Shown: positions 10,376-49,700 of the stretch, piece after piece
How positions within the stretch are numbered: position 1 is the first letter of the stretch
How the letters are laid out: every line of letters begins with the position of its first letter
Source: Lepidodermella squamata
Taxonomy: Eukaryota; Animalia; Gastrotricha
Direction: 5' to 3'
NCBI GenBank assembly: GCA_047495785.1
Contig: JBLDXI010000021.1
Coordinates: 372,001-436,000 of the forward strand
Length of the DNA stretch: 64,000 bases
Translations under genes and position numbers: made by a program
The notes under the pieces: model-generated
Databases searched by the model: none
Seen by the model: the letters and a program-made list of their open reading frames with translations, nothing else
What the model was told of the DNA's origin: nothing

Positions 10376-12007
10376 ATGTACAGTAAAGATTGGTCATCCG
10401 CGCCAGATGACGGTCGTCGTAGTCGTGAAATGAGTGCAAACTACGACAGGAGCATGTCTTTAACTAGGAGAATCGCCGCTGAAGCTCAAAATCGACCCTG
10501 GCACAAGATTTCAGCAGTACTCGGTCGGGTTGAAATTCCACTTTTCCTCTACTTTTTCGCCTCTGGAATATTTTCGGAAGCCCAACAGCGGATTATCGAT
10601 GGGAGAATTTGCTTGTATCAGTATAAATCGCCCTCGATATGCGAACACATCTCTGACGAACCGGCCTTAGCGCTGAACAAAGCTGCAGTCCAGCGAGATG
10701 TTCAAGAGTTCACGTTGTTAACCGGTCTGTTCTCGAACCTGCCAATGATAATTATCGCTGTAACTCACGGATCATGGTGCGATCGAATCGGTCACAAAGT
10801 TTCCCTCATTTTCCCTCATGCTGGGGATGCAGTGCTGGGATTCCTGTATCTTCTATTTCTAAAAGCCCCGGTTGATATCATTAATCCAGTGTATTTCGGT
10901 GTGACCTCGGTCATCTCAGGGCTAACTGGATCTTGGGCTGTAATAATGATGGCATGCTCGTCCCACGCGATGTTGTCGACACCTCATCCTAACCGGTTAT
11001 TCCGAATCGCCCTGATTTCCGCCTCTATCACCGCGGGACAAATCGCTGCGTATGCCATGAATTATTTAGTGCTTAGATACAACGCCTTTCCTTTCGCCTT
11101 CGTCCTCCAAATAGCCATCCATCTTTACGCGATTACTCATGTTGCCTGCCACGTTCAAGAGGTTCATTCCAAAGAAGAGGTTGACGCGAATAGGATCCGG
11201 TTGGCTGGTGGTTCGCATTTGAAGAACATTTGCATGCCGAAAGAAAACTTCCCCGCCGTTTTCAGCATATTTTTTGGCAAATCTGAAGATCCAAGGGAGA
11301 ACGAGGCAAAACGCTATAAGCGAATCATGTTGGTCACATTCGCGATATCGTCATGTCTCATTGGCTTCAAGTCCCTTCTAACCGTGATAGAAAATTTCAT
11401 GACCCTTCCGCCTATATCGATGCCACAGACGGAATATGTCCTCTTCATGGCAGCTTGTTCTTTGTCTCTGACCTTCGCTCTAGCTGTTTTAATCCATTTG
11501 TTCCACTCTTCTCTATTCAACAACTTCTTTCGATACACTGATGCTGGTATAGCGGTGATATCATTAACCACCCGAATGCTAGCAATGCTGACACTTGGGT
11601 TTGGCGATATCTTGCCGAATGTAGCTCCTTGGCTGTATTGTGCTCTCCATATGTTCAGCCTTTATCCATTGGCTGCGCTAGGAGCTGGAATGTCCAAATT
11701 GACGGAGGATAGTAAGCAGGGTCGTCTATTCGCAGTTCTATGCCAATTTGAGAATTTCTGTCAAACCGGTGCTGCATTCGGCTTCAACGCGCTTTTTGCG
11801 ATTTTCGCGAAGGAACATGTTGGTCCGTTGGACAGTAACACTACTCACTTCATCCACGGCTACATATTCATCTTTTCTGCTGGATTAACTCTTTTACCGC
11901 TTATGGCAGTCATTTGGCTTGGCAGAAAGCCGATCAACAACTGGAGTTTCCAGAAGAGCGTCCCCAGCGTTTACGGCTACATGGAAGAAGCACCCGAAAT
12001 TAACTAG
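10376..12007 (+). CDS. MFS transporter, SLC46 (PCFT-like) family, intronless
   Basis: 543 aa with about 12 hydrophobic segments, VEIPLFLY in TM1, a Cys pair in the first loop, GSWCDRIGHK (MFS motif A variant) and SKL...QGRLFA. Confidence 0.85.
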   Translation: MYSKDWSSAPDDGRRSREMSANYDRSMSLTRRIAAEAQNRPWHKISAVLGRVEIPLFLYFFASGIFSEAQQRIIDGRICLYQYKSPSICEHISDEPALALNKAAVQRDVQEFTLLTGLFSNLPMIIIAVTHGSWCDRIGHKVSLIFPHAGDAVLGFLYLLFLKAPVDIINPVYFGVTSVISGLTGSWAVIMMACSSHAMLSTPHPNRLFRIALISASITAGQIAAYAMNYLVLRYNAFPFAFVLQIAIHLYAITHVACHVQEVHSKEEVDANRIRLAGGSHLKNICMPKENFPAVFSIFFGKSEDPRENEAKRYKRIMLVTFAISSCLIGFKSLLTVIENFMTLPPISMPQTEYVLFMAACSLSLTFALAVLIHLFHSSLFNNFFRYTDAGIAVISLTTRMLAMLTLGFGDILPNVAPWLYCALHMFSLYPLAALGAGMSKLTEDSKQGRLFAVLCQFENFCQTGAAFGFNALFAIFAKEHVGPLDSNTTHFIHGYIFIFSAGLTLLPLMAVIWLGRKPINNWSFQKSVPSVYGYMEEAPEIN

Positions 12008-12182
12008 ATTTTTAGAATTGTAATCAATTTCAATAAACTATTTCTGCATTTACGATTAAAGCAAACTCTTGTCTTTTTGCTATGACGTCATACAACATTT
12101 TATCATTTGCCGGCGGGTTTTTATCTTTAACGGTTTCAAGGCCAACAATTATCCTGTCTAATAGTGGAGCTTTTACAGAATC

Positions 12183-13667
12183 ATGTCTAAAATCACTAGC
12201 ATCTTAAACGTGATCAAAAGTATGATATTGGGGCCAGAAGTGCCCCTGTTCATATTGTATCTATCGCAAGGAATCATCAATGCTGCCCAACAGCAGTTCG
12301 TTTATCAACGCATTTGCATGTACCACTATGATTCGCTGACACTTTGTAACCAAATCGACAAGTCGCCCGACTTAAAGCAGCAAGAAACTCAAGTTCAGGT
12401 GGATTATTCGCAATACTCAACTATACTACAGCTTACGTCGTATGCTCCTGTTATTTTTGTTGCACTGATCTACGGGGCTTGGGTAGATCGGATCGGTTAT
12501 CGAATCCCGTTGGTCTTGCCTCACATTGGTGGCATATTATGCACCTTGACTTTTCTGCTATCGTCACTCCTGCCGGCGAAAGCCTTTAATCCGATATACC
12601 TCGGAGCTTCCTATGTTTTCATTGGCCTAACTGGTCAAAGCTCTACAGGAAGTATGGCTGCTTTTGCTTACGTCACTCAGATAACTGACGGCAAAGACAA
12701 GCTGATTCGATTAGGAATTTTAGAGGCATGCATGACAATTGGTGATATGATTGGGTCTTTTCTCTCTGGCTTCGCGCTTCACGGTGGCAAAGACTACAAC
12801 CTGGCCTTTATACTTCAAATCGCTCTCAACTTTTACGCGGTATTCTACACATTCTTTGTTTTGACGGAGCTGAAGCCATTCAGTGCGGTGAGGGAGAGAG
12901 TGAAAATCGAGGCTAACGGATCTTGGGCGAGGTATCTATTGTCTCCGAAAGAAAACTTCATATCAGCGCTGAAAGTAATTTTCGGAAAATTTCCTCATCG
13001 AAATGGCGAGAAGCGGCGTTGGCTTCTAACGATGCTGCTAACTTACTTTTGGCTCGGTGCTGTTACAACAAGGCCAACTAATCAAATGCTTTTCGCTTTC
13101 CTGACTCTTCAGCCGATATCTCTCACACCATTTCTATACACCATGTTCCAAGCCGTTTACTTGACCGGTATTTCATCTGCGCTGTTTTTATTAATGCCAC
13201 TTCTTCGCATGAAGGCGGGTAATATCCTCCCGCTGACTGATGCGATGCTTGGATTCATTGGAGCTATTTCCAGATTTGTCGGCATGATCATCTTGGCTAT
13301 GGGGGGTCTCTTCCCGTCTGTCGCGCCATGGTTATCCAGCGTCATTTTAGCTCCAAGTATTTTTGCTTTCATTTCAATGCGATCTGGGCTAGCTTATGTC
13401 TCACAAGAAGACGAAAGAGGGCGCGTTTACGCAGCAAACACTCTTTTCGAATGCATATCAGTTCTTCTCGCAGGTCTCGGCTACAATGCTCTTTACGGCA
13501 TTACCGTCGCTCAAACCCTATCTTCCCCATTAAAAGCAGCCTTAGTCCATGGCTACCCTTTCTTAGTTGTCGCAGGTGTAGCTCTCATACCATTGATTAC
13601 TATATTATGGCTTGGTAAACAGCCCATTACCAATTGGGCTTTTGCAAGTTCCACGAGAAAAATGTAA
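12183..13667 (+). CDS. MFS transporter, SLC46 family, intronless
   Basis: 494 aa with GAWVDRIGYRIPL, AFAYVTQIT...RLGILEAC and ERGRVYA. Collinear paralog of both neighbours. Confidence 0.88.
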   Translation: MSKITSILNVIKSMILGPEVPLFILYLSQGIINAAQQQFVYQRICMYHYDSLTLCNQIDKSPDLKQQETQVQVDYSQYSTILQLTSYAPVIFVALIYGAWVDRIGYRIPLVLPHIGGILCTLTFLLSSLLPAKAFNPIYLGASYVFIGLTGQSSTGSMAAFAYVTQITDGKDKLIRLGILEACMTIGDMIGSFLSGFALHGGKDYNLAFILQIALNFYAVFYTFFVLTELKPFSAVRERVKIEANGSWARYLLSPKENFISALKVIFGKFPHRNGEKRRWLLTMLLTYFWLGAVTTRPTNQMLFAFLTLQPISLTPFLYTMFQAVYLTGISSALFLLMPLLRMKAGNILPLTDAMLGFIGAISRFVGMIILAMGGLFPSVAPWLSSVILAPSIFAFISMRSGLAYVSQEDERGRVYAANTLFECISVLLAGLGYNALYGITVAQTLSSPLKAALVHGYPFLVVAGVALIPLITILWLGKQPITNWAFASSTRKM

Positions 13668-13807
13668 CGTAAATAAAACAGCTTTTGTCTTGTATTCTCT
13701 TGTCACGTGAGCTGAAGTGAGATAAGATAGTGGGAAATTTCCCCGACATCAGATAAATATCTTGGACGTTGTACTAGCTTAGAGATAAACTACCAATAGC
13801 TGAGAAA

Positions 13808-15384
13808 ATGATCGAAGCTGCCTTCGAGATCGGCTCTGGCGAAATAACCCTTAGGCACGATGGTTTGGAGAAGGAGACAACCGTCCGAAATAAAGAAAGC
13901 AGAAACTTTCCCATGAAATTAGCTAGTAAAAGCTTTTGGTCACCATTTTTCTCCGGACCTGAAATTTCAGTAGCGTTGTACTTCATCTGCTACGGAATTT
14001 TCGTACCGGCACAACAACAATTCATTTACCATAGCATCTGCATGTATAACTTCGATTCGGAATCAGTATGCGACCAAATCGACAAATCGCCACAGCTTGA
14101 GGAACAAGAAGCCATTGTTCAAGTTCAATACTCCCAGTTCTCAACAATTTTTCAAGTCGCATCATACACTCCTGTAATTTTCGTAGTGTTGGTCTACGGC
14201 GCTTGGTGTGACAAATTCTCCTACCGGATACCGCTTGCCCTCCCTCACCTTGGCTGTGTGATAGTGACTTCACTTTATCTAATACTCTCGATTGGCCGAT
14301 TCGCATCGATGAATCCAGTCTATTTCGGTGCCTGTTCTTTCTTTCTCGGCGTGACCGGGCAGTCTGGGACTGTAACTATGGCGGCCTTCTCATATGGCAG
14401 TAGAGTTAGCGATGGGAAAAGTCGAATGGTGAGATTGGCGATTATTGAGGCCTGCACAACCCTAGGAGAAGCTTTTGGGTATCTTTTCACAGCCTTCATT
14501 TTTGATGGTGGCAAAGATTACTACAGCGCGTTTATGATTCAAATCGCTATAAATGCCTATTCTATCGTACTGATTTTCTCAACAGTCAAAGAAGTCGTTC
14601 CTTTCAGAGAGGTTAAAGCACGAGTGCAAGCAGAGACAAATGGCTCCTGGCTGAAATTTTTATTCTCGCCAAGAGAGATATTTTTGCCCGTGTTCAAGAT
14701 CATCTTCACAAGATCTACCAATAGAACGGCGGAACAGCGTCGCGAGCTGTTCATTTTCCTGCTAACGTATGCCATGTGCTCGTGCTTAGTTGGCTCCCGA
14801 CCGACGTCTCAAATATTGTTTGCCTATTTGTCGCTGAGACCCATATCAATATCTTCGTTTTTGTACACTATTCTCAACACGGTTTACGTATCACTGGCAA
14901 CATTCAGTCTATTTGTAATTTGTCCGATTTTGCGGATGAATTGCCCGCCACTTCGTCTGCCTTTTTCTGATGCGGCATTAGGAATCATTGGCATAATTTC
15001 CAAAATGGTAGCGTTCCTTTTGCTTGGATTAGGAGGATTTTACCCCGAACTCGCTCCTTATTTGTTTTATTGTACCGGTTGCTGTGCGTGTTCAGTTTCA
15101 TCTCAGTACGGTCGGGAATATCAAAAATAGCAAGCGGAGAGGAGGTCGGCCGGTTATTCGCCGCTAGTTCTGTCCTGGAAAATATTTCTGTTTTATTGGC
15201 TGGTCTTGCTTTTAACAGTCTTTACGGGGTTACAGTTGCGCAGCTTCCTTCATCGGAGATTGCAATAAATTTAGTGCATGGCTATCCTTTCCTCATTATC
15301 GCAGGATTGTGCATTGTGCCGCTAATACTATTCATCTGGTTAGGAAAGCAATCTATACCTAACTGGTCTTTTTCGAATTCATGA
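13808..15384 (+). CDS. MFS transporter, SLC46 family, with one 1-nt frameshift near 15077
   Basis: ORFs 13808-15130 and 15070-15384 join into a full-length paralog of 12183-13667 if one base is restored at ACC GG- TTG. Confidence 0.82.
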
Positions 15385-16643: not shown

Positions 16644-17963
16644 ATGATGATGGCTACAAAGGCCTCGTTGGTATTGATTTTGTGCCTGACAGCAGCAACA
16701 CTGAGCGAATGCTCTGTATCGAGAGCTACCCTAGAATTCCCATTAAATGGTATGTATTTAAAAAATTCGAGATCAGGTATATCTAACACACGTTACGATT
16801 TCAGAGGACAAATGGCAGTTGGTTGGAGAGGCGAAGTATATTGACCGCGATCCGGCCAGCACCTTGCTCACCGAGGCGCCGAGAATTCGCTTAGTCGAGC
16901 CTATGAATGCGACTGAAGAATCATTCGGCGCTATTTGGAGTCGTCCGGTAACATTTTAATTTACATACTGAATTTCGTTTTATTGCTAGTATATTTTATA
17001 AGGAATTCCCGAGCGAAATTCTGTCGAAATCTAGCCATTGGCAGCTCGATGTTCTATTCACTGGTCGATCATTTCTGCATGGGACCGATATCGTTGCTGT
17101 TTTATTTGCGACTAATGAGTCATTTCCAACTACTCTTGGTATTCGAATTTCAAAATTTAAAATAAAATTTCATTTTAAAAATTCACAGACGAGCCCAACG
17201 ACAATTTCAACGGGTTTGGCATTGCAGTCAGCACGAATTTTGGCTCGGATCCATTGCAACCTGTAATTATTTCTAGCTATTTGTTCCAAATTTCGAAGAT
17301 ATATTATCCCTCAATCTATTGCAGGAAATTATTTTGACAGCCGCTGCTAGTGGATTCCCGGATAAAGTTCTAAAAATCAAATGCTGGGTCTATTCGTTTA
17401 TGGACTTGATAAATCGCCGATTTCGTCTCGTTTTCCAAAAAGATGGCAACAACTTGGCGATTCAGTACTTCAGCCCGTGCAGTCGGACTTACAATTTAAC
17501 GCTTGATATCAGCTCTTTCATCAACAACACCAACCAAAAACTGCATGTGGGTGCTGCAGTTTCAACTAGCCCGTTATCTGGCCGTTATCTCGATCTAATG
17601 ATGATGGAATTCAGCGATAATTTTACGAAAAGTTTCGGCATTGGCGAAATGTTGGTCAAGGAGTTGAGCTTAGCTAATCACACGGGGAAACTGCCGTCTT
17701 TCGAGAATATTTCGGCAACACTTTTACAATCAACGGCTAAACTCTTCAACAACACGCAAATCGCATCGCCGCCGTCGAAAGTTTCATCTGAGACGAAAAT
17801 GCTCAAGAAAGTGAAGAAAATCGCCGGCGCAACTCAATCACCTATTCCGCAGGCTTCACGGGAGGAAAAGGATGGCAGTAAAAGCAGCGAAGAAGAAAAT
17901 GAAGGCAATTTGTCGTTTGAGAAAAGTGATGAACAGAGTAATGACAAATCAAACGAGGCGTAA
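16644..17963 (+). CDS. Secreted L-type (legume/ERGIC-53-like) lectin-domain protein, 5 exons
   Basis: Spliced by hand: signal peptide, KWQLVGEAKY...IRLV...FGAIWSRP, HWQLDVLF, FNGFGIAVST. This matches the W-x-L-x-G / GAIWS / W / F-x-G-x-x-I pattern of L-type lectins. It has a charged low-complexity tail and no TM segment. Confidence 0.6.
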
Positions 17964-18196
17964 ACTTCTCAAATTTTCTCTTGATCAAAATAAATTGAAC
18001 ATAATTTAACTGTAAATTTCGTCTTATTTTGGAATTTGGATTACATTATTTCTACTCAACCCTGGTAGGTATATGAGACCGTCCGCAAAAAAATGGGGAA
18101 AATGTTTTATGGGTTGCCCGAACACAATACCTGTATATATGTTTGCTTTGCTTTTCATCCCTCTTCTTGCTCGCGGTCTCATATTTTTGAAATTTA

Positions 18197-18217
18197 GGGT
18201 TAGGGGTTAGGGTTGGG
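18197..18217 (+). repeat. Telomere-like (TTAGGG) tract able to form a G-quadruplex
   Basis: GGGTTAGGGGTTAGGGTTGGG has four G3+ runs with 2-3 nt loops, about 250 nt upstream of the eRF1 ATG. Confidence 0.7.
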
Positions 18218-18464
18218 ACTTGAATATCACTCCCGATGTCACAGTTGATAAACGCATTTAACATTCAGTGCAGAAATGAGTGCGTGCGCCTGCCTACTGA
18301 TTAGACTGGGCTATGAATCATCGCTCTTTTATACATTAGGAAATATTGCATCAGAATATTCATCTATAAAACTGCGCGCTGTATGCTGTATATGCGCACT
18401 TTTTGAAGGAAAAAATTGCTGACTGTTGTCGCTTGTCGCATATATCATATTTTAATTTTAAAAA

Positions 18465-20224
18465 ATGACCACAACCCACAGCCGAGCCGAGGCTGGCAGT
18501 ACCGAAGACACTATAGCGGTGTGGAGGACGAGGAAATTTATTAAAGAGCTGATTGGAGCGAAGGGGTAAAATTCGGTTTTTAAATCTCAAATTCCCTTGA
18601 ACCTCTAGCTTTATACGTAGAAATGGCACAGGCATGATCTCGTTAATTATCCCGGCAAACGGCCAAATCGCTCGGATAAGCAAAATGCTGGTCGGTGAAG
18701 TCGGAGCTGCTGCGAACATAAAATCGACCGCCAACAGGCAGGCCGTTCAACGGGCATTGAAATCTGTTCAAGAGCGGCTGAAATTGTATCATTCTCGTGA
18801 GCTTAAAATCCGCCCTAATATAGTGGAATTTCAATGTTTTCAATTATTTAGTGCCACCAAACGGGCTGGCTATTTTTTGTGGAACCGTGCTGATGGATGA
18901 TGGCAAAGAAAGGAAGTTGTGCATCGACTTTGAACCTTACCGCCCGGCTGGGCGAGCTGTCTATCTATGCGATAGCAAGTTTCACTGTGACGAGTTGCAG
19001 GCTCAGCTTGAAGAGAATCGCAAATACGGCTTCATAGTTGTCGACGGCAACGGAGCGCTCTACGCTACGTTGGCAGGAAATTCGCGCCAAATCTTACACG
19101 TTTTTGGCGTTGATTTGCAAAATAAGCAGGGCCGGGGCGGTCAGTCGCAACAACGATTTGACCGGAATCGATTAATTCAGCGGCATAATTACCTGCGAAA
19201 GGTTGCTGAGATCGCTACGAAGTTGTTCATAGTTCAGGATAAGGTGAACGTTGAAGGCTTCATAATTGCTGGATCAGCTGCTATCAAGGATGAATTGGTT
19301 CAATCCGATCTATTCGACAAGGTCAGAATTTAAAAAACTTATTTGAAAAATAATCAACTTTTTACAAAATAGCGATTAGCTGCGAAAGTAATTAAGGTGG
19401 TCGACGTAGCTTATGGCGGAAATCGCGGGCTCAATCAGGCTATCGATTTAGCCGCGGATGCTATATTAAACGTCAAATATTTCCACGATAAAGCCGTAAT
19501 AAGTATGCGAATTAAAATCTAATAATGCCTGAAATCTACTTTCAATATTTTTTCAGCGAATTTTTTCGACGAAATCGGCGCCAATTCGGACAAAGTTATT
19601 TTTGGCGTGGACGAGACAATGCATTGCCTAGAAACAGGCGGCGCTGTCTTGACATTGATTGTATGGGAAAACCTGGACGTGGTCAGGTACACTGTTCGTC
19701 GCAAGGTGCCCACAGATGACGACGCTGTTGAGGACGCTGTAAAAACGGTCTATGTGCGACCTGAGCAAATTAAGCGCGGCAACTCTTGACTGACTAAGGC
19801 TCTCGGCATCTCTGACGGAAGATCTCAGGATGCCGAAATCGTTGACAGCCAGCCCCTCATTGACTGGATCGTCGAGAACCATTCAAAATTCGGTAAGAAA
19901 AGACTCTGAATTGCGGAACTATTACCAATTGATAACGATTCAAATTGTATAGGCTGCAAGCTAGAACTCGTGAGCGACACTACGCCAGAAGGAAATCAAT
20001 TTTGCAAGGGGTTCGGCGGCTTAGGGGGTATACTTTGTTGCTTTTCGGATCCTAATTGAGGGTAACTATTGTTGCGACATTTTACAGGAATGCTGCGCTA
20101 CAAAGTTGACATGGCAGCTTTTTCAAGTCCATTGGCTGATCCGGAAACTGGCGCGGGGGCGAGTGGCACGGTCGATGAAGCTGAGGATCCGGCTGATCTT
20201 TTTGATCTCGCCGACTACATATAA
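18465..20224 (+). CDS. ETF1: Eukaryotic peptide chain release factor 1 (eRF1), divergent, with an in-frame TGA at codon 370
   Basis: Exons 18465-18565, 18621-18796, 18852-19321, 19373-19502, 19557-19892, 19953-20027 and 20088-20224. All introns are GT-AG, 51-60 nt and phase-compatible; 474 codons plus TAA. Motifs [48 protein letters not shown] and acidic tail FDLADYI. Confidence 0.96.
19787..19836 (+). promoter_or_regulatory. Candidate stop-codon readthrough cassette: UGA-C plus 3' stem-loop
   Basis: TCT TGA CTG ACT. Hairpin: TCGGCATC (19803-19810) pairs with GATGCCGA (19829-19836) and CTGA (19812-19815) with TCAG (19825-19828), with one bulged T and a 9-nt loop. Confidence 0.6.
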
Positions 20225-20412
20225 AAATTGGAAGGATAATGATGTTCACAGATTACTACGTATAAGCACTAAGGATCCGTTTCAATTGTTCACATCCCCC
20301 ATAAATGACTCTGTATACTAAGTTTAAATCGCAAACTTACAAATCCATAGCTTGCAATTATATTCAAATATAAAAGATTGGCATGTAATGTTCCTTATAA
20401 TCTTTATTAAAT

Positions 20413-21168
20413 TCAAGCGCGATTACGAGCGGGAAATGGGTCATCGCCATCATTGGTATGGATTTTCGAAGTTTCGGCTTCGTATCTCACCCGCCTTACA
20501 AATCGTCGACGCTGCCGTTGTCCACCGCATAAGAACTTAGTAACCACATAATAAATCAACAACAGCAAAATAGCCGCGGAGAAGCCGTAGAAAACGGAGA
20601 CACTTATGACCCATACTTTACAGCCGTGATAAGTCCAATCGAATTTTACGTTTTGATCGATATTAGCTTCAACAACATTGTAACGCCGGTAAATCACGCC
20701 GAATTTGTTGTAGACGACGCAGAGCAAGTTAGATCCGGGTTGAACTTCGGAAGGGAGTGGCCATGAGAAAATGCCGTCAACATTTTCTAGTTTGAACAGA
20801 GCTGTCTCCTTGCCTGGGCCGTAGTTATCGATCATAGCATACCATTTGATCAAGGCTTGGCCAATTTTGACAGAACAGTCTAGGTCTGGACAGGTGCTGG
20901 GATTGTGACCGCAAGAGCGAATCCCAAGCTCGAATTGATTGGGTTCTAAGCGAAATATTGGGGTTGTTAATTTCACTCCGCTGCCGTCCGAGAGTCGAAC
21001 TAGCTTTTCAACGCTGCTTGCCAATTCCTTAAAGTCAGCTGCGACAAGACCGGGCGCAATCGTGTCGTTGTAGTAGAGTAGGTCTGTGGCGTTCTCAGAT
21101 GCGTTAATAATGGAGGAAACCATCATCAACACCGTAATCGGAAATAAAATTGAAACTCTTGAAATCAT
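20413..21168 (-). CDS. Type I membrane protein with a single Ig-like domain
   Basis: Signal peptide, PIF...LDCS...IKWY...LLCVVYNKFG (Ig C...W...C-x-V-x-N-x-x-G pattern), TM segment and Arg-rich stop-transfer sequence. Confidence 0.75.
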   Translation of the reverse strand: MISRVSILFPITVLMMVSSIINASENATDLLYYNDTIAPGLVAADFKELASSVEKLVRLSDGSGVKLTTPIFRLEPNQFELGIRSCGHNPSTCPDLDCSVKIGQALIKWYAMIDNYGPGKETALFKLENVDGIFSWPLPSEVQPGSNLLCVVYNKFGVIYRRYNVVEANIDQNVKFDWTYHGCKVWVISVSVFYGFSAAILLLLIYYVVTKFLCGGQRQRRRFVRRVRYEAETSKIHTNDGDDPFPARNRA

Positions 21169-27284: not shown

Positions 27285-28688
27285 TTAGTGGAAACAATTA
27301 AATTTGCATGGAACACATGAGAAGTTCGCGATAGGTGTCTCTGGGTTATCATGGATCCATTTCTTGAAAACCAGACCAGCTGATTGTTGGTACCAAGTTT
27401 TGTTGAAGCCGTAGCGATTATTAGGGTACTCATGCACCAAGTAAGTCCTGTTGAACAGTAGCTCATGAAAGCAATGTACTGCTAACGCGTCCGAACGGAT
27501 CATCAATTTATTTACAAAGAGCTCAGGCCGTTTGCCAAGCCGCTTTAGGTCTCCGAGCCCGAAGACACACACGCCATGGCGCCACTGTCCTTTGCAAGTC
27601 GCATTGTCATAATCTTCCCATTCAGAAAATCTCGTCACCCAATCTTTACGACCAACAGATACACATCGCCCAGGGTAACCACCTGGAACATGGACATTTT
27701 CGATGTTGTGATTCATAGTTGCCCAGTAAGCTTCGTCCATCAAAACCGAATTGTCGATATACCGGACCAAGTCAGCAGCAATTTCACTCGAAATTAAGTA
27801 CTCGGCGAACGAACGGCTGAGGGAGGTGCTGACAGATCCTTTGTAAATCTTTAATGCCCGGGCAGGATTAGGCATTGTTGTCTGCTGCAGCTCTTTGTCG
27901 TAATCGAATTCCAAGGGTAGACCATTTTCTTCATATGTTACAGATATCCGCTTGTTTAGCAACGTTTCGTCTATTTCGAGCAGTTCTACGTCGTTGGTTT
28001 CATTGAGAATTTTCGCAATTTGAACCAATTCTCTGTTTGTTCTCAACGGAAAATCTTGGCCCTGAAGAGTGAAAACATATTTCCATGGATGACCGCTTTT
28101 GAGTAGGGCTTTCAAACAGCTGCGATATGCTCGAATCATGTTCAACCCCAGTGATGAAACTGAGTACTGCTCTTCGGCTACTATGACGTTTGGGAAGCAT
28201 CTGGCGAATCGCCGAAGACCGCTTTCAAACAACTGCGGTGATTTCAAGTCGATATGGAGGCAGTACAAGTTTTGTGGGGCATAGATCGCGCTGAGAAGTA
28301 GCTCGACTTGCAGTAAATCTTCGTTAACAGGAACGGCGTAGGCTAACGGAAATGCAGCCTCCTCGACACTGCCCGGTTCATCCGGATAGAAGAATCGCTC
28401 TTTAATGGTCTCGCAGGAGGCAAAAGCTTTCCAAGTTGAGAACTCTTTCTCCAATTTCATCGGTTTTAAAGCCTGTCCGATCGCTGCTGCGTCTCCTTCC
28501 ATTATCGCAGGGCAGTCATAGCTGTGCCGCCTTTTGTAGAACACCTCTGTAGTTGGCCTTGAGCCGTCTTCCGTGTCTAACTTCAGGTGGCGATTTGGAG
28601 TGGTGGCGATTAATGCGTAGGTTACAACAGCCGCGAAAAGAAATCCCACACAGCCGTTGCGAGTTCTCTTGCCGAAAATTCGCGTCAT
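27285..28688 (-). CDS. Core-2/I-branching beta-1,6-GlcNAc transferase (GT14, GCNT-like)
   Basis: Type II anchor, EEAAFPLAY, IYAPQNLYCLHIDLKS, WKYVFTLQGQDFPLRTN, KGS, DEAYWAT, RHGVCVFG and LFVNK. Start set at MTRIFGKR by comparison with the paralog. Confidence 0.93.
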   Translation of the reverse strand: MTRIFGKRTRNGCVGFLFAAVVTYALIATTPNRHLKLDTEDGSRPTTEVFYKRRHSYDCPAIMEGDAAAIGQALKPMKLEKEFSTWKAFASCETIKERFFYPDEPGSVEEAAFPLAYAVPVNEDLLQVELLLSAIYAPQNLYCLHIDLKSPQLFESGLRRFARCFPNVIVAEEQYSVSSLGLNMIRAYRSCLKALLKSGHPWKYVFTLQGQDFPLRTNRELVQIAKILNETNDVELLEIDETLLNKRISVTYEENGLPLEFDYDKELQQTTMPNPARALKIYKGSVSTSLSRSFAEYLISSEIAADLVRYIDNSVLMDEAYWATMNHNIENVHVPGGYPGRCVSVGRKDWVTRFSEWEDYDNATCKGQWRHGVCVFGLGDLKRLGKRPELFVNKLMIRSDALAVHCFHELLFNRTYLVHEYPNNRYGFNKTWYQQSAGLVFKKWIHDNPETPIANFSCVPCKFNCFH

Positions 28689-29015
28689 TGCTATCAGGAA
28701 AAAACTGCATATAGCAATGTGTGGCTCGTTATAGACACAAATAGTTGGCTGCATAGTTCGATACAGGCGGTCCTTGGCAAACAAATGTCCGGCCGAGTAT
28801 CAAATTTGTACGCTGCAATTAATTTTTAATTTCTATGTGGACAGTGGCTATTCTAGCTCGAAATCGATTTCTTGTGCATCTCTGAGTAACTATTCTAGCA
28901 ACAAGTATCTTTCGCATATTATAACCATCGCTGCCTTCATTGTTCCCATGAAATAATGGTACATTGCAAAACTTCACATCTTTTATTTTTCCCAAATATT
29001 GCAAAATTAGAAAGC

Positions 29016-30443
29016 TCAATGTAAGCAATTGAATGTGCACGGAACACAAGTAAAATTTGAAGTAGGCGTTTTGGGATTCTCGCGATACCATTTTTGGAAC
29101 AATACACTGGCAGACTGCTCGTACCAAGTTTGGTTGAAACCGTACTGCTTCGGTGGGTATAAATTTTCATAATAAGTCCTATTGAAATGGAGCTCGTGCA
29201 GGCAATGAGCAGCTATCGCCTCGGAACGCACTGAAAGCTTGTTTGCAAAAAGTTCCGGCCGTTTAGTCAGCCGTTTGAGATCAGCCATTCCAAACATGCA
29301 GACGCCATGCCGCCATACACCTCGGCAGGTTGAATTCGGGTAATCAGCCCATTGAGTATATCTAGTTAACCAGTCCTTTCTGCCGACAGAAACACATCGG
29401 CCAGGATAACCACCTGGCGGTGACAGCTCTTCGAAATTGTGGTTCAGAGTTGCCCAATACACCTCGTCCGTTCGAAGAGTATGGTCAAGATAATTAACCA
29501 ATTTTCTAGAGACTTCACCACTCAGCGTGAATTCAGCAAATTTGCGGCTTAATGCCGCACTGACGGAGCCTTTGTAGTAGGTTATTCCTTTGATAGGAGC
29601 CGGAGTCGAGGCTTTCAACTCTTTGTTGCCATCGACATCCTTAGGCACGCCATCCGCTTCATATTTTACCTGAAACCTCTTCTTCAAGCGATTTTCGTTC
29701 AGGTGAAGCAATTCGACGTCGTTAGACCCATTGAGGATTCTGGCTATTCGAACCAACTCTTTGTTAGTTCGAAGAGGGAAGTCTTGGCCTTGTAATGTGA
29801 ACACATACTTCCAAGAGTGGCCGCTTTGGGTTAATGCTGAGATGCAGCTACGATACGCCCGGATCATGTTCATTCCAACGGAAGATACAGAGTACTGTTC
29901 ATCTGTGACGATGATGTTTGGGAAGCATTTAGCAAATCTTCGAACTCCTCGCTCGAACAGCTGGGTAGCTTTAAGATCAATATGAAGGCAGTAGAGATTC
30001 TGCGGAGCGTAAATTGAGCTCAGCAGTAGTTCGGTTTGCAGCAAATCTTGATATACTAGAATATTGAATGCTAATGGGAAGCTCGCTTCTTCCTGGCTAG
30101 CTGGTTCAGTGGCGTAGTAAAATCGCTGATTAATCGCTTCGCACGACGAAAAATTCTGCCAAACTGCGTATTCAGTTTCAAGGGTGATTCCCGCTTTCGA
30201 AGCGGCTAGAATAGACGGCATACGGCCCTGAAGGATAGGTTCGCAGTCATGTGGATGCCGCTTTCTGTAAAACGGAGCCGCATTGTTAACATGCCCAACT
30301 TCCCTGCTGTCGCTAAGCTCACGTTTCGGCCGTTGATAAGGCGTTGATGCGATGAGGGCATACGTTACCACAACAGCCAAAACAAAGGCGATGGCACAGT
30401 TCCACAGGCGTTTGCCTAGGCTGATGAAACGAACCCTAGCCAT
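29016..30443 (-). CDS. Core-2/I-branching beta-1,6-GlcNAc transferase (GT14, GCNT-like), tandem paralog
   Basis: 475 aa, intronless, same motifs (EEASFPLAF, IYAPQNLYCLHID, WKYVFTLQGQDFPLRTN, DEVYWATL, LFANK). Ends in TGA where the paralog has TAA. Confidence 0.93.
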   Translation of the reverse strand: MARVRFISLGKRLWNCAIAFVLAVVVTYALIASTPYQRPKRELSDSREVGHVNNAAPFYRKRHPHDCEPILQGRMPSILAASKAGITLETEYAVWQNFSSCEAINQRFYYATEPASQEEASFPLAFNILVYQDLLQTELLLSSIYAPQNLYCLHIDLKATQLFERGVRRFAKCFPNIIVTDEQYSVSSVGMNMIRAYRSCISALTQSGHSWKYVFTLQGQDFPLRTNKELVRIARILNGSNDVELLHLNENRLKKRFQVKYEADGVPKDVDGNKELKASTPAPIKGITYYKGSVSAALSRKFAEFTLSGEVSRKLVNYLDHTLRTDEVYWATLNHNFEELSPPGGYPGRCVSVGRKDWLTRYTQWADYPNSTCRGVWRHGVCMFGMADLKRLTKRPELFANKLSVRSEAIAAHCLHELHFNRTYYENLYPPKQYGFNQTWYEQSASVLFQKWYRENPKTPTSNFTCVPCTFNCLH

Positions 30444-39352: not shown

Positions 39353-40698
39353 TTACGGAACACCCGCGAGTCCTCCGCCCGCCATCCCCCACTCAGGATT
39401 CGTATTAGCCAAACGCCGCATGCGCCTATAAAAAATTTAAATTAATAAAAAATCCTTCTCAACATTTTTTTCGCAAAATTCTCACCTTGTAATACGATCT
39501 TGATCTTTGAGTTTTTTCGCCATTTCTGCGTCGCTTAAAACATCGACAGTAGGCCCCCATTGGTCGGCTTCATTCTGAGCCCTAAGCGGGACTTCAACCG
39601 GGGGTAGCATTTGAGATTCGCCCGAAAACGCGTAGACACCCTGGTACCAGGCCAATTGACCGCGGATCGAATACGCGATAGTCGATACAAATTCACCGCC
39701 CAGCCCTAACTCAGCGCACAGCTTCTGCGCGAACTGCTCCGGATTATTTTCCGGGTTTGACATGTCCCATTCGAACTGATCGACTAGACACAAATTTCCG
39801 ACATGTATATTCAGCTTAATTACAACTCGACTGTCTGACTGCTCTGTTATGAATGATGAATCAGCCGACGTAAAGCCGTCTAGTTGTTGACGTATGCGTT
39901 GAGCAATAGCTGCGGAAATCATTCAATTAGTTTAATGTGGTCACATTGTTTAATTAAATTACGTTGAGCAAATGTTGTTGGGTTCAGGTCGAGATCTTCG
40001 CATAAAATTTCGGCGAAAGCTTCCGGCGTGATCAGCTGTTCGTTTTTATTCCAAACGAAGCAGTCGCGCAATTTCGCGCCCTCTAGTTCTAGGTCAAGGC
40101 GGATAGGCACCAATACCTCGGCCTGGTTAGCGTTTTCTGTCAGCTTAAACGGGTCCAGATCGTCGAAGCACATCGGGAAAGACGTGGCTTTAGTGCGCAT
40201 AGGCATGAACCGGTTGTGATTGACCGGGGTGCAGCACGGAATGGCTTCGAGGTGGATTGAAGTCGAAGGCATTCCTGACACCCACGGCGACGCCCCGGCA
40301 GCAGCGGCGGCCGCGGCGCCTCGTTTCGTCGTAGTTTTCACGCTATCATTGCGCGACATAGCAGGCGTAGGCGCCGTAGTTGGACCTGCGGGGCCTGTTG
40401 GGACTTTGAAATTTGCGTCAGTGCCGTCCATAATTCCAGCAATTATCGCATCGACCTCAGCGGCTTTTAGCAACATGCAATTCTGGGTGATGGCGCCAAA
40501 CGGCACCACGCCCTGGTCTACCAGTAGCTTCCTTTCGTCGTAAGTGATTTGCCGCTTCCATAGCTGCGGGTACTTTCGGTAGATAGTGCCGCGAAATAGT
40601 CGCAGGTAAGCGCCGACTTCAGACCCGATGTAGTACTGCTCGCCTTCGAGTTCGATTTTTTTGGGCTTTTCGCCAAAAGTGGCCGTGCCAACGTCCAT
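39353..40698 (-). CDS. SMARCB1: SWI/SNF subunit SNF5/SMARCB1
   Basis: Exons 40698-39963, 39909-39486 and 39425-39353. Motifs [63 protein letters not shown] and [15 protein letters not shown]. Confidence 0.97.
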
Positions 40699-46772: not shown

Positions 46773-49700
46773 ATGTCTAAGAAAGTTGGTAAACTCGTTT
46801 CGCCTATGGACGAGGTAGAAGACGAAGATTCTCAGAACGACGCCATTATGGACGTTGAGCAACCGGAAGATGGATCCAGTGAGAGTGACAGTGAAGACGA
46901 AAGTGGCGGTGAAGATACTGATGCGATTGAAAGGCGAACTATGGAACTGAAAAATCTGGTTCGTCATTTTCGGATTGGCATCAATACCACTGCCTTACCT
47001 CGAATTTTAGATTTCACAAAACCCTTACGCGTATGATCAACATGTCGAGCTTATCAAATGCTTGGAAAAGCTGGGAGAGCTTGACCAGTTGCGATTGGCT
47101 AGGAAGCACATGCACGAATTATATCCATTGTCAGAAGGTAATCGATTACAATCGCACTTATTCATGCGCTAATTTCATCTTTAGAATTATGGCTTAAGTG
47201 GCTTCGCGATGAGGTAAAATTCTCCGAGGACAAGAATGCTGTTGTGGAGCTTTTCGACGAGGCTGTCAAGGACTATCTTTGTATGTTGACCATCACTTTT
47301 ATTTAAGATGAACTATTTTTTCTTTTAGCTGTCAACGTATGGCTAGAATATTGCCAATATGCAATCGGGACGTTTTTATCAGAATCACCCGATAAGGTCC
47401 GATCAGTGTTGGATAGAGCTCTCGCAGCTTGTGGGAATCACGTAATCAATGGCGCCACAATTTGGGAAGTTGCCCGGGAATTCGAAATCGCCATGCTCCA
47501 AGTTGACGAAGCTAAGACTGGCCCTGATGCTGAAAAGGCACTGGCGATTCAGAAAAATCGCGTTATCGCTCTTTTCAAGGGTCAACTGAGCGTTCCGCTA
47601 TTTGAAATGGAATCAACCTTCAACGAATATTGCGAATGGCTGGGCGATGTCGAGCCTGAAAAATCAGTGAAAGACGCTTATGATAAAGCTCTGAAAATGT
47701 ACTCAGAACGCAAGCCATTCGAAGACAGCCTCCTTGAATCAGATCCACCACCTGTTGAGGCTTACACCGCTTATTTACAGTTTGAGGAGGAAAAGGGCGA
47801 CCCGACTCGTGTTTCCTGTCTTTATGAACGAGCGATTAACGATCACCCATTGGTAGAAGATTTTTGGAAGCATTATTGCAATTTTCTGGAGAGAAAATTA
47901 CGTTCAGGCCCTGAGGTTATCTCGGCTTATGAGCGGGCTGTTCGAAACATACCATGGTCCGCCGAGTTGTGGATAAAATGGGCGCAGGCTCTTGAGAGGA
48001 GTCACCCCGAAAATGTTGCAAAATTGACGAAGATCTTTGAGGACGCTATTGCTGCTGGTTTCCAAAAAGAAGCCGACCAGGTTCAAGTGTGGGTGGCTTA
48101 TCTCGACTTTTTAAGGCGCAGAATTAATTGGGACCAGCCGCACGAAACTGAACTTGCCAATCTTAGAGCTGGTTTCAACAGAGCCGAAGAAGCAATAAAT
48201 GCTATGCAGGAAAAGCGAGACCACTTACCTACTGTCCTCAAATACTGGGCTTTCGTCGAGGCTAAGTACTGTCAAAACGTGGAAAAGGCCCGTCATTTAT
48301 GGCACATGGTTACCCGGCTAGGGCGGGGAAGTCAGGCCGATTTGTGGCTTGAATACATATCATTTGAACGAGCCTTTGGCGACTCGCCTGCCTCATGCAT
48401 TTCAGTCCTACAATCAGCGCTTAATGCCGTTACAGATCGGCCGGAAGCAATATGCGCGGCTTACATTAATTTCGCTCGTGAGGCATGCAGTCTCGAACAA
48501 TTGGATGAAGCTATTGCAGCCTGCGAGAAACGAAACGCGTTGTTGAAAAAACGTACTAAAGAACAAACTGATCGCGAAAATGCGAAATTGGCTAAATCTG
48601 TTGGAAAACATGGCCATTCTGGTCTTGGGTTTCATAAGGGTAAAAATCAGGAGGAAAATTCAGGTGCGGCTAATAAACCCGGCGGTGGGCAGAAATTTGT
48701 GAAAGCTGGCCAAAAGCAGTTTCAAGAAAATCAGAAACAGGCGCCAAAAAAGTTTGAAGATCACGGAGATTCGTCAAATAAGCGAAAATTTGACCAAAGT
48801 GGCGATCATTCGAAGGCTGAAGGTGAGTCGCCCTTCAAGAAGCCTTTCGCCCCAGCTCCGAAAAAAGATAATAATTCGTTCAAAGAGCCGTCGATTCCGC
48901 CGCCACCCAAGTTCCAAGAATCAATGGAAGAGAAGAAAGAAGCTCCTGCTGCCCGAAGGAATGTCAATTTTTCAGAAGAAAATCCTACTACTGTCTTTCT
49001 TAGCAATCTGGATTTCAAAATTAAGGAGGAGGATATTCATGAATTTTTCAAAGACGTAAGCTTCATGCATCAATTTTTTTGTATTTCACATCTGATATAT
49101 TTTCTCTGGTTAGTGTGGTGAAATCGACGACGTTCGGCTAGTCCTGAAAGCTCAAAATCTCAACAAAGGATTTGCCTACGTCAAATTCGCCAATGTCTCG
49201 TCAGCGAATAAAGCGCTGGAAATGGACCGGCAAAAACTGAAAGGTAGACCGGCTTTTGTGTCACCCTACAAGGAAAAGGGCGACGGGCCAAGTGCCGAAA
49301 AGAAAGGCGGTCTTATCGTAAGTTCAAATACGGGTAAACGAAAAAATACTCCTTTAATTTTTCAAATTATAGTTTTCCGACGCCTTGGAAAAGAATAAGC
49401 TGTTCATTCGCAATGTTCCTCTGTCAACTACGGACGAATCCCTAACTGCCGCATTTTCAACTCATGGCAAGGTGAAAGCCGCTAGAATAGTTACGTTCAA
49501 AGACGGCACGCCTAAAGGCATTGCTTACGTCGAGTTCGAATCAGCAAGCGATGCGGAAAAAGCGCGTGAAGCCACCAATGGAACGTCGCTACTCGGCGAG
49601 GGAAAAATTCTCAGCGTTGAAATTTCGAATCCGCCGAAAAAGCGCGAAGTCAACGCGGCGGCTGGGGCGTCTTCATCAGCTGCAACTCGCAGCCGGGCTA

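Follow-up and report, generated by a model that had tools for sequence, protein, structure and literature searches.

What becomes of an animal release factor when the residues with which it reads UGA are replaced and its own reading frame is interrupted by the same codon? The question is raised by a gene for eRF1 in the gastrotrich Lepidodermella squamata, located in a 64,000-nt stretch of contig JBLDXI010000021.1 (assembly GCA_047495785.1, positions 372,001 to 436,000 of the forward strand), hereafter called the window, in whose coordinates all positions are given. Few animal proteins are as conserved as eRF1, and natural variants of its decoding pocket are known only from protists with changed genetic codes; here, a natural animal gene under selection combines substitutions that laboratory work has linked to weakened termination and weakened UGA reading. 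Judging from the sequence, we give about an even chance to the reading that the gene encodes a working, expressed, selectively maintained and extremely fast-evolved eRF1, a second copy, specific to its lineage, that accompanies a canonical eRF1. Its own in-frame UGA makes it a testable case of a coupling between stop-codon specificity and release-factor dosage.

Gene structure and identity

The region 17800-20800 was read and candidate exons were translated, which gave the following gene model.

18465..20224, + strand: eRF1 gene, seven exons, 474 codons (hand-built model checked by translation)
18465-18565, 18621-18796, 18852-19321 and 19373-19502, + strand: exons 1-4
19557-19892, 19953-20027 and 20088-20224, + strand: exons 5-7
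20222-20224, + strand: terminal stop TAA

All six introns have GT..AG boundaries and measure 51-60 nt each. The exon pieces matched the Pfam families eRF1_1, eRF1_2 and eRF1_3, all above the curated cut-offs, and phmmer alignments of the exon 2 and exon 3 pieces to human eRF1 structures were free of gaps and spanned residues 30-86 (E = 1e-14) and 89-244 (E = 8e-60), respectively. Human numbering was set by phmmer alignment to human eRF1 N-domain structures, in which residue 1 of the exon 2 query corresponds to N30.

Residues involved in stop codon reading

The motifs on which stop codon recognition and peptide release depend are located as follows.

18625..18633, + strand: GTS loop, here Gly31-Thr32-Gly33 (GGC ACA GGC; S33G, T32 kept)
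18706..18726, + strand: TASNIKS changed to AAANIKS (T58A, S60A; NIKS intact)
18727..18747, + strand: post-NIKS helix, RVNRLSV changed to TANRQAV (R65T, V66A, L69Q, S70A)
18947..18982, + strand: INTSL changed to AGRAV (residues 120-124), then YLCDSKF (YxCxxxF intact, N129S)
19136..19144, + strand: GGQ catalytic motif, intact, within GRGGQS (19130-19147)

Translation and alignment confirmed every residue change named in the original prediction, which had been made from the DNA letters only, namely GTG in place of GTS, Ala70 (codon GCC, 18742-18744) and the altered stretch at residues 120-124. Over their full lengths, TASNIKSRVNRLSV is replaced by another 14-residue string at 18706-18747 and INTSLYLCDNKF by another 12-residue string at 18947-18982. 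Comparison with the human eRF1 structures likewise supported the earlier statement that E55, NIKS, YxCxxxF and GGQ are intact: the stop-codon contacts E55, NIKS and Y125/C127/F131 (YxCxxxF) are all present, N67, R68 and V71 are retained in the helix after NIKS, and the loss of GGQ and of the stop-recognition motifs that is typical of Dom34/Pelota is not seen. The GTS loop is absent (GTG), as is the TAS preceding NIKS, which reads AAA in the window allele and AAS in the other; the predicted alteration before NIKS accordingly holds at residue 60 for the window allele (Ala60) and fails for the other allele, which has the canonical Ser60. Around GGQ, H180Q was found, together with P177Q in the window allele only.

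How unusual these residues are was gauged in a set of 284 full-length eRF1s from animals, fungi, plants and many divergent protist representatives. The residue found here occurs in 1.1% of the set for S33G (3/284), 2.1% for T58A, 0.7% for S60A, 0.4% for R65T, 0.7% for V66A and 1.8% for S70A, and in none of the 284 for I120A. The changes at 33, 58, 60, 65 and 70 are almost confined to divergent protists, and none of them was present in the named eRF1s sampled from animals, fungi and plants. The replacement of Ser70 by Ala or Gly known from eRF1s that read only UAA and UAG is thus present here, as GCC.

Comparison with mutagenesis of the P1 pocket

The P1 pocket comprises eleven residues next to NIKS that have been alanine-scanned in yeast (Blanchet et al. 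2015, PMC4381064). In that study T32 and N67 mutants were lethal, whereas viable mutants of R65, K109, V66 and L69 showed increased readthrough at all three stops and viable S33A and S70A mutants showed a 5-10 fold increase at UGA only; S33A, S33C and S33T each increased UGA readthrough, S33 and S70 were proposed to form a hydrogen-bonded pair, T99 and E107 mutants displayed improved termination and the N30 mutant had no effect (PMC4381064). Set beside these data, five of the eleven pocket residues are changed in the gastrotrich gene (S33G, R65T, V66A, L69Q, S70A), and these are five of the six viable-but-leaky positions, K109 being the one kept; also retained are the lethal T32 and N67, the hyperactive T99 and E107 and the neutral N30. 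V66A and S70A are identical to the assayed mutants (PMC4381064), which were single laboratory mutations, whereas here five changes stand together in a natural, selected gene, three of them with other residues (Gly, Thr and Gln). Among N-domain columns conserved in at least 95% of the 284 eRF1s, three of the five pocket columns are changed as against two of the 33 others (Fisher p = 0.011), although the contrast is weaker at a 90% threshold (p = 0.07).

The original prediction had rested its case on S70A, described as a ciliate-type loss of UGA recognition. The two observations cited for it were found in the literature: Ser70 is replaced in UGA-reassigning protists, with Ala70 restricting UGA decoding in Euplotes eRF1 and present also in Blepharisma (PMC3025575) and Ser70Gly occurring alongside UGA reassignment in Blastocrithidia (PMC12153298), and the change weakens UGA termination in experiments, 2.4-fold for human S70A (PMC3025575) and UGA-specifically for yeast S70A (PMC4381064). 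That UGA elicits a weaker response can thus fairly be expected, but "loss" overstates the case, because human S70A still reads all three stops with eRF3-GTP (PMC3025575) and because Ala at position 70 occurs also in standard-code ciliates, being absent in turn from several UGA-translating ones (10.1101/2023.10.09.561518). On its own, S70A is not enough for UGA reading to be lost, nor is it required. In another respect the case had been underrated, as both partners of the proposed S33-S70 hydrogen bond are lost and R65, V66 and L69 are changed as well. By analogy with the mutants, the factor is predicted to be active on UAA and UAG, weaker overall, and weakest on UGA.

Divergence, phylogeny and search for relatives

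The gene stands apart from all canonical eRF1s. It is about 55% identical to every one of them, while canonical proteins share 85-93% among animal phyla; by domain, its identity to the animal consensus is 54% (N), 61% (M) and 44% (C), compared with 77-84% for domain N of yeast, rice and slime mould. Of 89 universal columns it keeps 80, and all 89 are kept in all sampled animals, fungi and plants checked, which, together with the identities among phyla, bears out the premise that animal eRF1 is normally very highly conserved. The non-conservative losses among universal N-domain columns are exactly S33, R65 and S70; in domain M the universal residues H180 and E196 are replaced, and the gene departs from the sampled animal-type eRF1s at 37% of the columns showing at least 98% invariance among them. 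A maximum-likelihood tree placed the gene inside the animal/Capsaspora clade (support of 93 in the Shimodaira-Hasegawa-like approximate likelihood ratio test, SH-aLRT), with an exact position made unreliable by the long branch: its terminal branch measures 2.49 substitutions per site, about 12 times the median of 0.2 and well above the maximum of 0.54 for other animals. Contamination by, or transfer from, a protist was ruled out by this tree position, the host-type introns and the animal gene neighbours.

The acceleration is specific to this eRF1 gene, since two other genes of the window show ordinary conservation to human, namely an SNF5/SMARCB1 homologue (39482-40698), whose core repeat is about 69% identical to human SMARCB1, and a SART3 homologue (47406-49121), whose alignment with its human counterpart spans 390 residues.

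Divergence of this kind could also mark a paralog with another ribosome-associated role, as in Dom34/Pelota, or a decoy that holds eRF3 or the A site without efficient release. The extremely long branch, the divergence of all three domains and the changed M-domain universals H180 and E196 would fit such a protein, and comparable roles have been suggested for the divergent, weakly transcribed eRF1 paralogs of Blepharisma (10.1101/2023.10.09.561518). However, GGQ, NIKS, E55, YxCxxxF, T32 and N67 are kept, unlike in Dom34/Pelota, and the changes are clustered in the pocket that tunes termination instead of being randomly spread, so that we regard a role outside termination as unlikely.

No near relative was found in any searchable collection. 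For the exon 3 piece, the best match among 1.84 billion representative proteins reached 60% identity, and against 90%-identity clusters (proteins of 86-273 residues) identities were at most 64% for partial and 61% for full-piece matches. When the profile had a canonical scaffold, canonical eRF1s dominated the results, a simulated true relative ranking at about 120, just at the cut-off. With a divergent-protist scaffold the best match, excluding the scaffold itself, scored 122 bits, whereas relatives were expected by simulation at 220-300 bits. In the Joint Genome Institute (JGI) metagenomes exact peptides gave no matches and degenerate patterns reached at best 62% among 520 eRF1 loci. Exact look-ups of window proteins and of eRF1 fragments gave no record in assemblies. 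Three eRF1 proteins from Logan were slightly closer in identity and came from unrelated recent runs, none of them being the 2014 transcriptome run SRR1273732 that the L. squamata genome paper names. As the L. squamata genome has been described as the first sequenced of its phylum (PMC11660948), the absence of near relatives would be explained and would say little on the age of the gene. One public protein of the rotifer Adineta steineri (P0171, 642 residues), annotated as a single eRF1, is a head-to-tail fusion of an N+M part and a second copy from which part of domain M is missing; the annotation has probably merged two tandem genes.

Transcription, alleles and selection

Contigs of four public runs were aligned to 18300-20400. 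The DNA run contained two versions of the gene at about equal depth, one being the window sequence and the other about 5-6% different. A further run of one of these studies contained nothing of the region, as would be expected of the C. elegans data produced alongside the gastrotrich genome (PMC11660948). In two RNA-like runs from two other studies, the exons were covered and the introns and flanks were not, and contigs joined the exons exactly across introns 1, 4, 5 and 6 of the model, from which we conclude that the gene is transcribed and spliced from both versions. The listed coding differences between the alleles comprise 24 synonymous and 8 non-synonymous codons; with about three times as many non-synonymous sites, the ratio of non-synonymous to synonymous rates (dN/dS) is of the order of 0.1, a rough estimate as 40 of the 113 allele differences were listed. 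Purifying selection on this eRF1 is clear. One outcome named beforehand as contrary to the original prediction, an untranscribed gene with a dN/dS near 1, was thus not encountered.

At two of the eight replaced positions it is the other allele that carries the canonical residue, Ser60 (18712 G>T) and Pro177 (19119-19120), where the window allele has Ala60 and Gln177. Since these canonical residues survive in one allele, the decoding region is still changing in the other. No difference at Ala70 or at the in-frame TGA described below was among those listed.

The same two versions (0% and about 5-6% different) recurred at about equal depth in three studies dated 2014, 2015 and 2024, a persistence suggestive of a clonal culture line with fixed heterozygosity. 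The published genome has 3% heterozygosity with two diverged haplotypes and a GC content of 43.3% over 122.8 Mb in 157 contigs (PMC11660948); the GC content of the window is 40-45%.

The in-frame UGA and its surroundings

Within domain C the reading frame is interrupted once, and the elements around this interruption are the following.

19787..19789, + strand: in-frame TGA, codon 370, followed by C; counterpart in human eRF1 about His356 (domain C, minidomain)
19790..20221, + strand: post-TGA reading frame of 104 codons with two introns, open and eRF1-like up to the TAA
19803..19836, + strand: hairpin of 13 bp with two bulges and a 6-nt loop, beginning 13 nt past the TGA

A 200-nt contig covering 19630-19829 was recovered for both alleles in DNA and RNA-like data with the TGA unchanged; all 13 differences of the second allele in this interval were listed, and none lies at 19787-19789. 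Because both alleles carry the TGA in both types of data, we conclude that it is real, predates the split of the alleles and is not spliced out. The full-length protein thus requires that an in-frame stop be bypassed, and the earlier claim that an mRNA ending in UAA nevertheless needs readthrough of UGA agrees with the terminal TAA at 20222-20224 and the single in-frame TGA.

The part after the TGA continues the protein, with GFGGLGGMLRY, in which the C-terminal GxLRY motif is kept, and an acidic tail, DLFDLADYI, and its identity to the animal consensus is 43%, compared with 45% in domain C before the TGA. The context is prone to recoding: UGA followed by C is the leakiest tetranucleotide context in yeast (PMC4748822), and the downstream hairpin has a folding energy of -18.1 kcal/mol (z = -3.07; 3 of 200 shuffles folded equally well) and no allele difference among those listed.

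Other ways of obtaining the full-length protein were considered and set aside. Incorporation of selenocysteine was ruled out, as no selenocysteine insertion sequence (SECIS) or other Rfam match was found in 19700-20500; a sequencing error, by the presence of the TGA in both alleles and three studies; a small intron removing it, by the lack of an upstream GT and by RNA-like contigs running continuously across it; and a nearby suppressor tRNA, by the absence of any tRNA gene from the window. High-level RNA editing of the TGA was not seen in the contigs, which hide rare variants. With a TGA that is real and unspliced, an open and conserved frame behind it, the UGA-C context with its hairpin, no SECIS and no tRNA gene, stop-codon readthrough is the likeliest route to the full-length protein.

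An in-frame stop, very high divergence and the lack of any annotated relative in the protein collections searched are also what a decaying, still transcribed duplicate would present, that is, a pseudogene with a premature stop. We consider this highly improbable in view of the 24:8 ratio of synonymous to non-synonymous allele differences, the six intact introns with spliced transcripts, and the presence in both alleles of the same single stop and no other defect; moreover, the 104 post-stop codons are open across two introns, for which simple arithmetic gives a chance of about 0.007, and are as conserved as those before the stop.

UGA as a stop codon elsewhere in the window

Whether UGA is still a stop in this animal could be judged from a pair of neighbouring genes.

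27285-30443, - strand: two tandem intronless Branch-domain paralogs (core-2/I-branching enzyme family), 60% identical

The two paralogs end at the same residue, one as ...FNCFH-TAA and the other as ...FNCLH-TGA, the latter having a TAA two codons later, and TGA is absent from the window's reading frames of 440-571 codons. UGA is still a stop in this animal, and the paralog ends and TGA-free long frames do not fit a genome-wide use of UGA as sense. The earlier remark that neighbouring genes still end in TGA was therefore justified, by one of the two Branch-domain paralogs, and since genuine termination occurs at TGA, the animal must have a factor that reads this codon.

Comparison with known systems

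In bacteria, the gene for release factor RF2 (prfB) is interrupted by a UGA that is passed by a +1 frameshift, and RF2 itself reads UGA well. The likeness to the present gene is that a full-length release factor depends on failed termination at UGA; the difference is that the present gene would be read on in the same frame and that its product seems to be a poor reader of UGA. Regarding closure of the loop on its own UGA, S33 and S70, needed for this stop, are both replaced in the factor. In plant eRF1-1, the regulatory stop is reportedly the normal terminal stop, with an intron in the 3' untranslated region, whereas here the stop is internal, 104 codons before the end, and the UGA-reading residues of the factor itself are altered. 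The two systems share an eRF1 mRNA with a leaky stop, and the plant report describes an expression loop that involves readthrough and nonsense-mediated decay (PMC5397192).

The eRF1 of Euplotes (Ala70), which reads UAA and UAG only, and those of Blepharisma (Ala70) and Blastocrithidia (Ser70Gly) resemble the gastrotrich protein in having lost Ser70, the serine required for efficient UGA decoding, while keeping NIKS, YxCxxxF and GGQ. In those protists, however, UGA stands for an amino acid, whereas here TGA continues to terminate genes, and the animal gene also loses S33, R65, V66 and L69 and contains a UGA within its own coding sequence. Strongly diverged eRF1s, perhaps beside another copy, are known from ciliates, with three paralogs of 60-72% identity in Blepharisma stoltei (10.1101/2023.10.09.561518) and a second one in Tetrahymena. 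Their hosts are protists, several of them with altered codes, whereas the present host is an animal; we found no published report of a divergent eRF1 paralog, or of an eRF1 such as this one, in an animal.

Second copy or sole eRF1

The internal UGA of the gene may act as a sensor of the efficiency of UGA termination in the cell. Termination there would leave a protein truncated in domain C and, with two exon junctions downstream, would probably expose the mRNA to nonsense-mediated decay. If the gene is a second copy, output of the UGA-weak factor would rise whenever UGA termination by the canonical factor falls. The positive-feedback switch suggested in the original prediction, in preference to simple negative feedback, is coherent as pure inference and would require both a second copy and competition for eRF3; in a single-copy setting the same layout would be ordinary negative feedback, as in bacterial RF2. 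As far as the sequence goes, the effect of the loop may be either to stabilise termination or to amplify readthrough. We lean slightly to a second copy because accelerations this large are common in duplicated genes and have no known precedent in an eRF1 that is essential and single, and because TGA is still used as a stop. A second copy would point to regulated readthrough in an animal, with a UGA-weak eRF1 that itself needs UGA readthrough switching readthrough to a higher level in certain cells or stages.

Several points weigh against this reading. No canonical eRF1 of the animal was seen in the 64-kb window that the data cover, and the transcript is present in both RNA-like data sets, one of them small, which fits a main housekeeping factor equally well. 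The UGA-weak activity is plausible by analogy with yeast and human mutagenesis, where S33G, R65T and L69Q differ from the exact substitutions assayed in yeast, human S70A reads UGA when given eRF3-GTP (PMC3025575) and Ala70 is present in standard-code ciliates (10.1101/2023.10.09.561518). Behind the TGA, the listed allele differences are three non-synonymous and two synonymous, a partial list and too few to show constraint.

There is a serious rival, which we rate as a lesser but real possibility: the gene may be the only eRF1 of the animal, with a fixed in-frame UGA that is partly self-suppressing and autoregulates the factor negatively, much as happens with RF2 in bacteria. Changes in the pocket that make UGA reading weaker would then have been favoured by raising the factor's own synthesis, at the price of leakier UGA termination genome-wide. 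Partial self-suppression, in which less factor gives more readthrough, would be consistent with yeast, where nonsense mutants of the essential eRF1 gene SUP45 are living strains (PMC2039749), and the S33A, S70A, R65A and V66A mutants are viable as well (PMC4381064). Transcription from both alleles, readily found in two RNA-like whole-animal data sets, purifying selection, and a canonical copy not seen within the 64 kb all suit a sole factor, as does a TGA that predates the allele split and has been kept although eight of its nine single-base changes would remove it. On the other side, the sampled animals, including a fast-evolving myxozoan, tapeworms and plant-parasitic nematodes, keep 89 of 89 universal positions, of which nine are changed here; a burst of this size would be unprecedented in a sole essential factor and is common after duplication; and TGA terminates ordinary genes while the long reading frames of the window are free of it. 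Were it nonetheless the only copy, the proteome of an animal would be run on an eRF1 with dismantled UGA-reading residues whose synthesis is gated by UGA readthrough, an early step toward a nuclear code in which, for an animal, UGA is ambiguous or reassigned; how stop codons come to be reassigned is a long-standing question. The N domain also offers a ready variant for work on readthrough and genetic-code expansion.

Other features of the window

Three tandem intronless genes on the + strand (10376-15130) encode proteins of 543, 494 and 440 residues; the middle one matches the major facilitator superfamily, and the outer two, without a Pfam match, look by eye like diverged paralogs. A short, imperfect interstitial telomere-like run of three TTAGGG-type units (18186-18215) precedes the start codon of the eRF1 gene by about 250 nt.

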